Positions 39,538 through 62,801 of a stretch of 64,000 bases of DNA are shown piece after piece. Origin of the DNA: Orbicella franksi. Taxonomy: Eukaryota. Location: positions 17,546,001 through 17,610,000 of the forward strand of contig OZ116707.1 of the NCBI GenBank assembly GCA_964199315.1. The letters are read 5' to 3'. Within the stretch, counting starts at the first letter, position 1. Each line of letters opens with the position of its first letter. Made by a program: the position numbers and the translations under genes. The notes under the pieces were generated by a model. The model saw nothing but the letters and a program-made list of their open reading frames with translations, was not told the origin of the DNA and did not search any database.

Positions 39538-40832
39538 CTTGTAAATGTCTGGGCAATATAGAGACTAAGAAAAAAAGAACCTGTGCCCGCAAATTTCTTT
39601 ATACCAAAAGATCGGTCTACCATACAAACATAAATATTTTAAATGCTTTTTCATTTAATGCGATTCGAAAAAACACTTCGAACGTTCGTAAGTTACCAGT
39701 GGGTCTGACTTCAAAGTGATGATGGCTCTATTAATTTTAACAAAACGTGTTCTAGCCAATATATCGTTTCCAAAATGGCCAACAGCTATAGATCTTCGAA
39801 ATGAGATCACCTCATAAATGTAAGACGTGATTTGTCCGTCAGATTATAAATATCAGAAGCTAGTAACATAACAGAGAAATTTACATTTGGAAATATATCA
39901 AACGCCATATTGCTAATAGAAAATTGTGAAATGGAATAATATTTATGTTCCGTTAGACGAAGAGTTTCGAACGCACATAGAATCACTCGGCTTATTTAAT
40001 TTAACTTTTTTTTCTCACGTGCGTTATACGTATCTTCGAACAATTCTTGGCAACCCTCTGCAAAACACAAAAGACAACACTTTGAGGATCGTTAACCACG
40101 GCGGTCGATATTTCGTATTTGAGTGCTGTCTTCACTTGTGTAGCTAAGCTAGGTTTTAGACCTACAGATAGACAGAGAGACACTGAACACCTCTAAGCAA
40201 TTGCGACACTCTGAAAAAAAATTATCAATGCAATTTTTCGTCTGGTGTTACCCTGCCGTCGCTCATCTTTCTGCTATCGATCTTTCGTTCAATCTTACAT
40301 TTCCACTGAAAAACACCGAAGAAAGGCTTGTAACAAAACGAAGTCAACTCTAATCTCGCTTTTGCCTCGAGAGACAGGGATCCCAATCACACCACTGACC
40401 TTAACACTAATCCAAACTTTACAAGGTGCATTAGTTATAACAAATTCCGGACGATTATAATTTTGGGCAAAAAAAGTGTCCGAAAATAAGACCGTCCAAA
40501 ATTTTACAGCGTCCGAAATTTTAAGAAATTTTGATTGAGGAAAGTAACGGCTTTGTAGAATTGGTGCCATTTTCTCGTCGGTGTTTCTGTAAAAACTTGA
40601 GGGAGCAGTTAAACCATCATTTTCACAGCTGTTGTTTTAGTCTAATTCGTGTTCGTTACAAAGTGTCGGAAAGTTTTGTCCGAAATTTGTCATAATTAGG
40701 TAGAAATTGTCTGAGTATTAAAGTTCCGAAATAAAACTACCGAAATTTTAACGTCCGAATTTTTTGCAAGTAATGTATAGGCATTCATTTTTTTGTTTAC
40801 CAAAACCCGAAATTTTAATTCAATTCAATTTA

Positions 40833-41481
40833 GGCCCGGTCCAAACGCCGTTCCACTCATGTGCCCAACCAAACTTGATTAAGTTCGACTTTAGAGCGAC
40901 TTTGGAGCGACGGCTGGTTCAGACGGCGTACTTGCGTCGAACTTAATTCGAGAAGCCGATAGTAACAATTTTCGACGAGACAATGTACGTTCCGAATTCA
41001 AGAACTCCGTCCAAATAGAAAAGCTATGGCTAACATTTCGCTCTTATAGCAATATTTAGGAAAGCAAATTCAAACTCAAGGTTCAGTACTTGTGTTTAGA
41101 CAGGTTTTCTCCCGGTTAATTCGACTTGCTAAAGGGGAATCTCGTAAGCTGGGCTATTATCACGAAGAAAAAGCAAAAATGAATTTGCTTATACAGTCCC
41201 GCGACTGCTCACGCCACTTAATTTTGACCCAATCACGAGTCCCGTTATATGAAAAGCACATTACAGTAATTTATGCATTAGGTTCGACACATGAGGAGAA
41301 CGCCGTATGAATCAGCTGCCGCTCCAACGTTGCATAGTGCGACAGACCCTGCCGAATTTAATGTTGTTTGCCGCACCAAACCTAACCTGCCGAACCAAAC
41401 TGATTCAAACGCCGCTCTTCTGCCGTACTTAACTCATCAGTTAGGTTCGGCGCACGAGTGGAGCGGAGTTTGGAACGGGCC
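40833..41481 (+). mobile_element. PIF/Harbinger-type non-autonomous element, 649 bp (left inversion breakpoint)
   Basis: ~26-bp TIRs ggcccggtccaaacgccgttccactc / gagtggagcggagtttggaacgggcc. The flanks are TTA on the left and TAA on the right, so they do not match. Confidence 0.9.
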
Positions 41482-41609
41482 TAAGTTAAAAAGGAAATTT
41501 AGATACATTTTAATTAAAACAGGACCAAGCGAGACTCATGTACGCCGCACTGAAACACTCAATGTTGCTCAACAATTTTTATCGTTTATCTTTTAATTTT
41601 CTTCTAAAG

Positions 41610-41726
41610 TTCAAAAGAGTGGAAAGTAACGTGTGCATTGTGGCAAGAAGACTTGGATGCGAGGGAATGGAAAAGACCGTCTATGACGACCGCAACGAAC
41701 AACAAGGAAAACCAGCCGAATACTGA
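41610..41726 (+). pseudogene. Orphan exon 2 of prepropeptide gene E
   Basis: FKRVESNVCIVARRLGCEGMEKTVYDDRNEQQGKPAEY*. The upstream intron matches 53345-53467 only as far as the MITE. Confidence 0.8.
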
Positions 41727-41920
41727 TTAACGCTGAACATTGTAACTTCAGAAGAATCAGATGATGATAATTATAGCATGGGATAAATACTGATAAATTG
41801 TAAGAAGTATAAAATAAAGCAATCGTCATAGTTGCAGCATTGCTTTCTCATTCACTTATCAAGCCACTTTTTGCGGTCTTCGGCTAACGTTTTAACAGGC
41901 AGACTCTAATTTAACTGCGC

Positions 41921-60492: not shown

Positions 60493-60562
<70 letters not shown>

Positions 60563-61050
60563 GGACACCATTTCAACAACACAATACAAATGTTATTTAC
60601 ACTCCTAAATGAGGGTTTTCTATTGCTCCTTTGGCCACTACACACCTTCCTCTTATTTAATATAATTTTGCACTTCTTTTTTTTCTGCATTCAGTATTTT
60701 TGTTAATTAAATTAATTTTACATAACTGAAATAAGTGTAAATAAATTGAATTGAATTAAAATTTCTTCATTTTCTGTTAATTCTGTTAATTCACCAGCAT
60801 CGCTTTGTGCGACTTTGGTCCTATTTTCGGGCATCCAACACCTCCACATAGAGATCTCCCACTCACTGTGAACTGTAAAACAGAAAAAACACAATACAAA
60901 TGTTATGAACACTCCCAAATGAGGCTTTTCTATTGCTCCTTTGGCCACTACACACTTTCCTCTTATTTAATTCAATTTTGCATTTCTTTTTTTCTGCATT
61001 CAGTATTTTTGTTCATTAAATTAATTTTACATAACTGAAATAAGTGTAAA
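60216..61050. repeat. Local tandem duplication (~60216-60745 and ~60780-61050) with an (AT)n microsatellite at 60495-60556 in the first copy
   Basis: Both copies start ttctgttaattcaccagcatcgctttgtgc and end cataactgaaataagtgtaaataa. Confidence 0.85.
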
Positions 61051-61053
61051 TAA

Positions 61054-61718
61054 GGCCCGTTCCAAACGCCGCTCCATTCATGCGCCGAACCTAACTGATG
61101 AGTTAAGTACGGCAAAAGAGCGGCGTTTGAATCAGTTTGGTTCGGCAGGTTAGGTTTGGTGCGGCAAACAACATTAAATTCGGCAGGGTCTGTCGCACTA
61201 TGCAACGTTGGAGCAGCAGCTGATTCATAAGGCGTTCTCCTCATGTGTCGAACCTAATGCATAAATTACTGTAATGTATTTTTCATATAACGGGACTCGT
61301 GATTGGGTCAAAATTAAGTGGCTTGAGCAGCCGCGGGACTGTATAAGCAAGTTTCTTTAGTGCAAATTCATTTTTGGCTTTTTCTTCGTGATAATAGCCG
61401 AGCTTACGAGATTCCCCTTTAACAAGTCGAATTAACCGGGAGAAAAGCTGTCTAAATACAAGTACTGAACCTTGAGTCTGAATTTGCTTCCCTAAATATT
61501 GCTATAACAGCGAAATGTTAGCCATAGCTTTTCTATTTGGACAGAGTTCTTGAATTCGGAACGTATATTTTTTCGTCGAAAATTGTTACCATCGGTTTCT
61601 CGAATTAAGTTCGACGCAAGTACGCCGTCTGAACCAGCCGTCGCTCCAAAGTCGCTCTAAAGTCGAACTTAATCAAGTTTGGTTCGGCACATGAGTGGAA
61701 CGGCGTTTGGACCGGGCC
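61054..61718 (-). mobile_element. Second copy of the Harbinger-type element, inverted (right inversion breakpoint)
   Basis: Reverse complement of 40833-41481 with scattered substitutions and a ~16-bp indel. In element orientation the flanks are TAA on the left and TTA on the right. Confidence 0.9.
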
Positions 61719-62801
61719 TTACAGAATTATTAGTTGGATATCCGTTCATTGTTTTTCTTGTTTTGGCTCCGTAATGTTTTGAGAACTTCTATTTTCAGCC
61801 ACCTGACCATATACCTATCTTATTTTTGTTATACGTATCCTTGGGGTGGACGCGCCAAACTTGGTTATTTACAATAAGCGAGCAACACCTAATTGAGCAT
61901 CTTGAAAGAGTGTTTTTTTTTAGTGCGTGAGCGCGCGGAACACTCTGAATCCTGCCGTTTCATTGGCTTCGGGAGTGGGGCAAATTTAGGAACTTGCCAA
62001 CTGACGCTATGATTCCGCCCGGGTTGATCAAGCAGAGCTCGATGTGGAAGTCTAAACGTTTTACCTAAAAAGCTCACAATATATTGCCGTTTTACCGTTC
62101 TCAAGTGAATGAAGAAATTCTCCCGAAAGGCGAGTGTTCATTTGATTTTGGAGTAAGAATTATTTCTCAAAATTACTCGTCAGTTTGTACTGCTGATCCT
62201 TTGCAGTGCTTCTAATTTTACTTAGTAACTTTGGACGACGCCATAAAAGCTGAAAATACTCGCGGGTATAGAAAAACATTTATTAAATGATAGTTCAAGT
62301 ATACCAAAGATTAGGTAACATGTAAAGCGAGAAAAACTATATACTACTAGGTCTTGAGTACGGTCTTCGCCCTACCGGAGAACGATGGCAAAGCTAATCT
62401 ATATGGACCTTCTGCCCGAAAAGGACATTATCTCACTTGCAAAAATGTACTGAGGCATTGGATGGTCCTTTTAATGGAACTCTGTTCCTGTTCAAAAACT
62501 ACTTGGGGATCATTCTAAGTCCAGTTTGGAAAAACGTGGGGAACATTTAGGGTTGGGATCATGTCGGACTCAATTTGGGATGATTTCTGGGCCTGGAACA
62601 TTTCGGAGTCCGGGATATTTCAAAAGCGATATAGTTCTTAACATAAACTCGCAGAAACAAAATTGAGATAAATGCAAGGTGCCTAACATAATGCAATAGT
62701 CAAATAATACACTGAAGTAAAAGAAGTACCAGGCTGAGCGTATACAAGACGTTTTGCGCTGGGTGTAACAACGGAAAAAACCCAAACATAACAAAACCAA
62801 C

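Follow-up and report, generated by a model that had tools for sequence, protein, structure and literature searches.

A 64,000-nt stretch of the genome of the reef-building coral Orbicella franksi (assembly GCA_964199315.1, contig OZ116707.1, positions 17,546,001-17,610,000 of the forward strand; hereafter the window, to which all coordinates refer) contains a cluster of small genes, named A to E, which appear to encode secreted peptides, as well as two copies, in opposite orientation, of a miniature inverted-repeat transposable element (MITE). Ectopic recombination between the two MITE copies has very probably inverted the segment that lies between them and, in doing so, swapped the second exons of genes A and E. 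In a colony other than that of the reference, a transcript joining exon 1 of gene A to the former exon 2 of gene E is made, correctly spliced and in frame.

A first-pass annotation of the window, made from its sequence, had already proposed a ~19.6-kb inversion between two inverted MITEs, and this inversion proves to be real on three independent grounds: an RNA splice and the contigs of two separate DNA samples. Gene E is also split in the way then described, with exon 1 at 62915-62802 (minus strand) and exon 2 at 41610-41726 (plus strand). The idea of a simply broken gene with an orphan exon 2 does not stand, this exon being now used in frame by gene A, a fifth gene that the annotation missed (exon 1 at 39235-39354).

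The events that led to this arrangement would be as follows. At the start, gene A would have lain on the plus strand, facing genes D, C, B and E on the minus strand, where gene E headed the tandem array E-B-C-D. Two non-coding MITEs of ~650 bp would have been inserted independently and in opposite orientations, each of them in the sole, phase-0 intron of a two-exon secreted-peptide gene. Homologous recombination between the copies would then have flipped 19.6 kb and exchanged their 3-bp target-site duplications. Because both breakpoints are intronic and both introns are in phase 0, the outcome is a reciprocal exchange of second exons between the convergent paralogs A and E: (i) the promoter, signal peptide and pro-region of gene A (exon 1) now go with E exon 2, to which exon 1 is spliced in frame, as the RNA shows; and (ii) E exon 1 would now face the duplicated exon 2 of gene A. 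The reciprocal product of E exon 1 and A exon 2 is a prediction from the sequence.

Breakpoints, hybrid transcript and new junctions

The two MITE copies, compared in opposite orientation, are 94-96% identical: they differ by ~30 substitutions and a 16-nt indel, and their longest identical stretches measure ~88 and 99 bp. The terminal motif GGCCCGKTCCAAAC is found at 4/4 MITE ends (0.01 matches expected by chance); the terminal repeats are near-perfect over ~27 bp and extend to ~74 bp at 78%; and hairpin folding gives a z of -8.9. A Pfam search of the open reading frames (ORFs) of the MITE returned no match, and the element has no coding capacity. Since the copies differ by 4-6% plus the 16-nt indel, far more, by a factor of ten, than the 0.4-1% seen between alleles, they correspond to two separate insertions.

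On the plus strand, the left copy is flanked by TTA/TAA and the right copy by TAA/TTA, i.e., the target-site duplications are exchanged, just as the first-pass annotation had read them; swapping the flanks yields TTA/TTA at both sites. This 3-bp signal is weak when taken alone, and its strength comes from the uninterrupted counterparts of the two insertion sites, X and Y, both of which had also been correctly located: (i) for site X, bases 40809-40832 equal the reverse complement of 60742-60765 at 24/24 positions, and the local duplicate that holds the latter runs on, colinear with the reverse complement of 61053-60885, for ~170 nt, the alignments overlapping by exactly TTA; and (ii) for site Y, in the intron of paralog C, bases 52279-53339 are colinear with the reverse complement of 62782-61722 (92% over 1061 nt) and bases 53340-53595 with 41482-41737 (94%, 256 nt), the two alignments meeting at a single triplet, that of 53340. 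Judged from these alignments, re-inversion restores junctions that agree, to the base, with the uninterrupted sites of the paralogous copies. As the counterparts of sites X and Y are colinear, sequences that now lie 20 kb apart on opposite strands were once contiguous. Re-inversion also puts D, C, B and E all on the minus strand, in the one-strand tandem array foreseen by the first-pass annotation. In this order the A exon-2 copies come after A exon 1 on the same strand, and site X falls within the intron of gene A.

The RNA data are raw poly(A) reads from a single individual (run X23), aligned to 39000-41960 at 97% likeness. The one splice joint reported from them over that interval, 39350->41606 (cut +4, that is, 39354^41610; GT..AG), is carried by 92 reads with 52 start places and as many as 74 nt on the shorter side. 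Both exons are covered at a depth of ~80-100, the intron at ~0-2. Since the two exons sit on opposite strands in the un-inverted arrangement, this transcript requires the inverted order of the assembly. Furthermore, short overhangs at the donor of gene A (39354) match the start of E exon 2 in 6/6 reads and A exon 2 in none. The hybrid is the major transcript at the locus, and E exon 2 is the only partner of A exon 1 detected in this colony. As for the other runs, no X21 reads aligned, and the RNA contigs of X16 and X25 offered no usable pieces over exon 2 at 97% likeness; such holes prove nothing.

Two independent DNA samples provide contigs at the breakpoints. In the first one (ERZ27245412; megahit contigs, k=141), contig L001 equals window positions 32423-41447 at 99.6% and passes from the left flank of site X into a MITE with left-copy variants, while contig L011 passes from a MITE with right-copy variants into the right flank of site X. 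Because both contigs differ at diagnostic sites where they overlap (element coordinates ~413-615), the left and right flanks of site X are attached to different MITE copies in this sample. In the second one (ERZ27245420), contig L013, from a k=141 assembly, follows window positions 61884-60533 and onward at ~99%, thereby comprising 165 bp of the left flank of site Y, the whole right MITE with its 16-nt insertion, and the right flank of site X. Both new junctions are, in consequence, seen independently of the assembly: the right one through L013, and the left one through the splice between A exon 1 and E exon 2 together with L001, which reaches to 34 bp before the MITE end. Among the contigs listed with A exon 1, 9/10 (eight of them from Logan) end at or before 40648, ahead of the MITE, and are uninformative on the junction.

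A mis-join by the assembler is the first rival to be weighed. The genome would then be un-inverted, and the assembly would have crossed from one MITE to the other within their identical stretches of ~90-100 bp; the presence of such stretches and a gap 480 bp from the left breakpoint both speak for it. Against it stand the 92 spliced reads, which come from another sample and join the exons on one strand only in the inverted order, the k=141 contig from a different sample that holds the whole right MITE with both flanks, and the attachment of the two site-X flanks to different MITE copies in a third sample. With the RNA splice and the independent contigs in hand, the mis-join that the first-pass annotation had named as its possible refutation is rejected; the probability left to it is negligible.

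The gap in question is the sole N run in the window. An (AGC/AGT)n array continues on both of its sides, as AGCAGCAGT-type units at 41925-41960 and as 18/27-nt units of the same AGC/AGT triplets at 42491-42925. The gap begins 235 nt past the stop of exon 2 (41726), beyond the AATAAA, and X23 depth is already down to ~1-2 before it; a long minus-strand "ORF" that spans it is a repeat artefact. None of the exons, reading frames or breakpoints rest on the gap. Only two things hinge on it: the length of the inversion (19,572 bp, 530 of them N) and the physical connection of the contig of the left junction with the contig that holds everything else.

Probable ancestral form and mode of origin

The sample that yielded L013 also contains a 1777-bp contig, L012, in which the reverse complement of 63316-61720 (at 99.4%) is joined directly to 41482-41661 (at 98.9%), with no MITE in between. 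This contig covers the upstream region of gene E, an identical exon 1, an intron with no insertion and the first part of exon 2. It is as close to E as clearly allelic contigs are (98.96-99.6%), versus 92% for C, the nearest paralog in the window. In the 165-bp flank that they share, L012 and L013 differ at 3 single-nucleotide polymorphisms (SNPs), which means that two haplotypes coexist in ERZ27245420; L013 and the window differ at one. A MITE-free, unbroken allele of gene E thus probably persists and the rearrangement would be polymorphic, a possibility raised by the first-pass annotation that has now become probable. Among the independent contigs, an allelic un-inverted X junction was not found, and no un-inverted haplotype with both MITEs was recovered.

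The inversion might, on the other hand, be real but fixed, L012 being then a recent extra paralog located elsewhere, or the product of another coral genotype or species in a mixed sample. Several observations lean that way: members of the family occur as tandem duplicates, the window reaches no further than 1.1 kb upstream of gene E, all six short overhangs at the A donor lead to E exon 2, and five reads with an E-like exon 1 (two mismatches from E) and a near-identical exon 2 hint at a further paralog. Nevertheless, the 1.6 kb of L012 that cover the upstream sequence, exon 1 and the intron are 99.4% identical to gene E, which is the allelic level and well above the 92% of the nearest paralog, and exon 1 is identical; a fixed inversion is, for these reasons, unlikely, while retaining some weight.

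A probably polymorphic, exon-swapping inversion is still the preferred interpretation, and the following points weigh against it: (i) the raw RNA reads come from one individual only; (ii) among the independent DNA contigs, none passes from the left MITE into its right flank, L001 ending 34 bp short, so that this junction is supported by the reference contig and the RNA splice; (iii) the link across the gap depends on the scaffold join; (iv) five X23 reads join an E-like exon-1 end to exon 2 (41606-41610), with a consensus two mismatches away from E exon 1 and an agreement of 0.73; (v) the empty site Y reads TAG, versus TAA beside the MITE, and hence a G>A change must precede the insertion; and (vi) there is a minor but real chance that L012 is a very recent extra paralog from outside the window. 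A further paralog, located outside the window, or a rare un-inverted allele may be the source of the five reads. Regarding the empty site, L012 has CTG-TAG-GTT, as does paralog C, and TAA is found on both sides of the MITE on MITE-bearing chromosomes. The simplest reading of these sequences is that a G>A change on one haplotype created the TAA target before the MITE was inserted.

With regard to mechanism, exchanged target duplications around inverted transposon copies are an accepted, published criterion for ectopic recombination (PMC3355041, PMC3698922). Here, the same element occupies each breakpoint in opposite orientation, the duplications are exchanged, the ancestral junctions are recovered by comparison and both new junctions are observed. 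The crossover was probably a homologous recombination event and not a transposase reaction. An inversion made by transposase could arise through aberrant or alternative transposition using the ends of the two elements, or through replicative intramolecular transposition from one copy, and this last process leaves the same two inverted copies with split target duplications. Besides, maize Ac inversions arise via alternative transposition (PMC8225341), and a preprint reports that bursts of PIF/Harbinger MITEs cause rearrangements (bioRxiv 10.1101/2020.08.24.265538). However, the copies differ by 4-6% and a 16-nt indel, far beyond allelic divergence and incompatible with one recent copying event; each of the two sites shows a 3-bp duplication and an uninterrupted counterpart of its own, with no third target site; and cut-and-paste elements are not known to replicate in that manner. 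Replicative or alternative transposition was judged unlikely given the divergence and the indel, and its probability is very low.

The right-type MITE of L013 (contig positions 166-832) carries five left-copy variants, at element positions 34, 123, 241, 297 and 488. These may reflect gene conversion between the inverted copies or an old polymorphism: they are compatible with conversion, not diagnostic of it.

The peptide genes, the element and their surroundings

The features of the locus are collected in Table 1.

Table 1. Features at and around the inverted segment, in window coordinates
Feature	Position	Strand	Remarks
Gene A exon 1	39189-39354	+	Transcript start near 39189, where RNA molecule ends fall; CDS 39235-39354, 40 aa; RNA depth ~80-100
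Hybrid gene intron	39355-41609	+	2255 nt; contains the left MITE; spliced out in RNA
Site-X TTA duplication	40830-40832	.	Left of the left MITE
Left MITE copy	40833-41481	+	649 bp; non-coding, long terminal inverted repeats, hairpin-forming; L001 has the same left flank, then MITE
Inverted segment	41482-61053	.	19,572 bp, 530 of them N; contains E exon 2, the two copies of A exon 2 and genes B, C and D
Site-Y TAA duplication	41482-41484	.	First bases of the inverted segment
Former E exon 2, second exon of the hybrid gene	41610-41726	+	38 aa + stop: FKR / VESNVC...LGC...YDDR...; AATAAA at 41813
Assembly gap	41961-42490	.	530 N; lies 3' of the transcript, within the (AGC/AGT)n array of 41925-42925
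Paralog B	49499-50219	+	Exon 1 intact; donor AT, not GT; earlier stop in exon 2
Paralog C	52141-53584	+	Pseudogene; intron with uninterrupted site Y at 53340-53342 (TAG)
Paralog D	56080-57074	+	Both exons intact
Candidate original A exon 2	60228-60308	-	26 aa, four Cys; TTTTACAG acceptor; assignment based on its position, strand and phase
Uninterrupted copy of site X	60742-60765	-	Within the local tandem duplicate
Duplicate of A exon 2	60786-60872	-	TTTTACAG acceptor; 1-nt insertion shifts the frame; nearest downstream acceptor for E exon 1 in the inverted form
TAA, reverse complement of site-X TTA	61051-61053	.	Last bases of the inverted segment
Right MITE copy	61054-61718	-	665 bp; spanned with both flanks by L013 in ERZ27245420
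TTA, reverse complement of site-Y TAA	61719-61721	.	Beyond the right MITE
Gene E exon 1 CDS	62802-62915	-	38 aa; phase 0, GT donor; identical in L012

Genes B to E share a pattern: exon 1 encodes a signal peptide followed by ...SG(K)KR-x-L-x-x-K, and a phase-0 junction leads to an exon 2 of the form (F/Q)(K/L)KR-V-x-S-x-[VM]-C-x8-C...YDDR. Exon 1 of gene A encodes a signal peptide and then ...IPSGKRQLHEK; its end is in phase 0, and a GT donor follows at 39355. This exon is only weakly like E exon 1 (36%), and the exon 2 presumed to belong to gene A differs from that of the family. No family exon 2 was found between A exon 1 and the left MITE. The candidates for A exon 2 are small, Cys-rich exons, unlike the family exon 2, which lie just inside the right breakpoint. 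At 60575-61053, the 3' part of the A intron and A exon 2 are duplicated in tandem, with a (TA)n run between the copies and the upstream exon copy frameshifted by one T. In the T-run of the signal-peptide coding region of gene A, 11/120 X23 reads have an extra T at 39270, which may stem from an allele with a frameshift, from a paralog or from a homopolymer error.

Two of the paralogs show damage. In paralog C, exon 1 carries two disabling lesions: a 5-bp insertion, which brings a stop into the signal peptide, and an in-frame TAA within the GKR-E motif. The intron and exon 2 of this paralog are still 92-95% like those of gene E. Paralog B (49616-49623, 50190-50219) has its exon 2 stop seven codons earlier than its relatives and may be a second decaying copy.

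A full-library homologue search with the exon-2 ORF returned seven proteins. One of them is a 76-aa protein of Oculina patagonica annotated as hypothetical (KAL9966547.1): its first half aligns with E exon 1 at 55% and its second half with E exon 2 at 69%, and the two halves meet at the same place as the exons do. Since this protein joins E1-like and E2-like halves, the combination of E exon 1 with E exon 2 is the conserved architecture and that of A exon 1 with E exon 2 is the new one. Homologue searches with E exon 1, A exon 1 and one antisense ORF gave only genomic read-through ORFs or nothing, so the searched database holds no spliced protein that begins with either exon. No match came from (i) Pfam, for all exon ORFs; (ii) exact-protein look-ups of the ORFs adjoining the junctions; or (iii) exact-pattern scans of JGI metagenome contigs for the left end of site Y and for exon 2. 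The ESM Atlas, queried with exon 2, gave a best score of 0.84, in the chance range, and no informative neighbour.

The motifs suggest that the product is a secreted precursor, with a signal peptide, G-K-R at the end of exon 1, K-R at the start of exon 2 and then a two-Cys peptide. In the peptide of E exon 2, the two cysteines lie eight residues apart, with KR ahead of them, and could form a disulfide. Nothing marks this precursor as a toxin.

The uninterrupted sites fix the target-site duplication at 3 bp, TTA at X and TAA at Y, in agreement with TWA. On these flanks and the terminal repeats (GGCC-type ends), which are the sole basis of the assignment, the MITE is probably of the PIF/Harbinger type; in that measure, the Harbinger label of the first-pass annotation fits. 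The 3-bp TWA duplication, terminal inverted repeats, small size and lack of coding capacity are all as in this superfamily, only two copies being visible in the window. Rice mPing, a PIF/Harbinger (Tourist-like) MITE, is non-coding and a few hundred bp long, with TTA/TAA 3-bp duplications, GGCC-type terminal inverted repeats and a preference for genic sites. The coral element shares with such MITEs the 3-bp duplications, GGCC-type ends, size, absence of coding capacity and genic preference. It departs from them in that its empty Y site reads TAG, not TWA, in both the allelic (L012) and the paralogous (C) version.

Other features surround these. Four Logan DNA contigs stop at 40645-40648, further ones at 40593 and 40615, and in the RNA reads divergence sets in after 40777; there is probably another repeat or structural variant just left of the left MITE (40647-40832). 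The (AGC/AGT)n array of 41925-42925 extends over at least 1 kb directly 3' of the end of gene E, and such an array is absent from the corresponding position of paralog C (from 53783 onward). A near-perfect palindrome at 44858-45144, whose 129-nt arms are 91% complementary and separated by 29 nt, may represent another small transposon of the hairpin type, and a related 133-nt repeat occurs at 43011-43143 and 45405-45537. Upstream of the peptide cluster, paired matches ~7.7 kb apart (16133-16552/23838-24255; 14383-14489/22088-22194) point to a large local duplication at ~12000-25500.

Relation to known systems and significance

Ectopic recombination between transposon copies is a well-known kind of event, of which the coral case is a new example. 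The closest parallels are the Drosophila inversions produced in this way by copies of Galileo (D. buzzatii) and of the MITE BuT5 (D. mojavensis 2s, D. uniseta 2x3), in which inverted copies of non-autonomous DNA transposons lie at both breakpoints, as they do here (PMC3698922, PMC3355041, PMC4168063). Exchanged target-site duplications and an ancestral arrangement recoverable by comparison are likewise common to both. Unlike those inversions, the coral one is a micro-inversion of 19.6 kb, with 3-bp duplications and an element of another family. Its breakpoints, moreover, lie in phase-0 introns of paralogs, and the consequence is an in-frame exon exchange and an expressed hybrid mRNA, not a position effect or simple disruption. 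What is unusual in the coral case is that a small, very probably segregating inversion gives rise to an expressed, in-frame, exon-shuffled peptide gene.

The human F8 intron-22 inversion, a cause of haemophilia A, also arises by homologous recombination between inverted repeats: the 5' exons are separated from the 3' exons and, with only one repeat inside the gene, the gene is destroyed. Both cases have in common inverted-repeat recombination, at least one intronic repeat and the parting of 5' from 3' exons. In the coral, unlike in F8, the second repeat lies in a phase-matched intron of a paralog, and as a result a new reading frame is made and used.

In the classical model of exon shuffling, recombination in phase-compatible introns joins a signal/pro-region exon with a different mature-peptide exon, and the coral event does so through introns of this kind. 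It departs from the classical picture in that it probably coexists with the ancestral form, and in that the mediating repeat and both junctions can still be identified. Exon shuffling is usually inferred long afterwards; here, the repeats, the junctions, the ancestral form (very probably an allele) and the hybrid transcript are all still readable.

In practical terms, an apparent mis-assembly or broken gene can turn out to be a functional rearrangement, and the inversion constitutes a simple structural marker, typable by PCR, for coral populations. It is also conceivable, if rather improbable, that the two intronic MITEs act as a natural exon-swap cassette, with both orientations maintained in the population, or flipping recurrently, since each one would yield two working, differently wired prepropeptide genes. 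If that were true, the A promoter with the E peptide and the E promoter with the A peptide would stand opposite the parental pairs, and transposon-mediated intronic inversion would be a standing mechanism that recombines secretion and regulatory modules with mature peptides in corals. In any case, the locus offers a concrete case of how transposons create new secreted-peptide genes in a reef-building coral.

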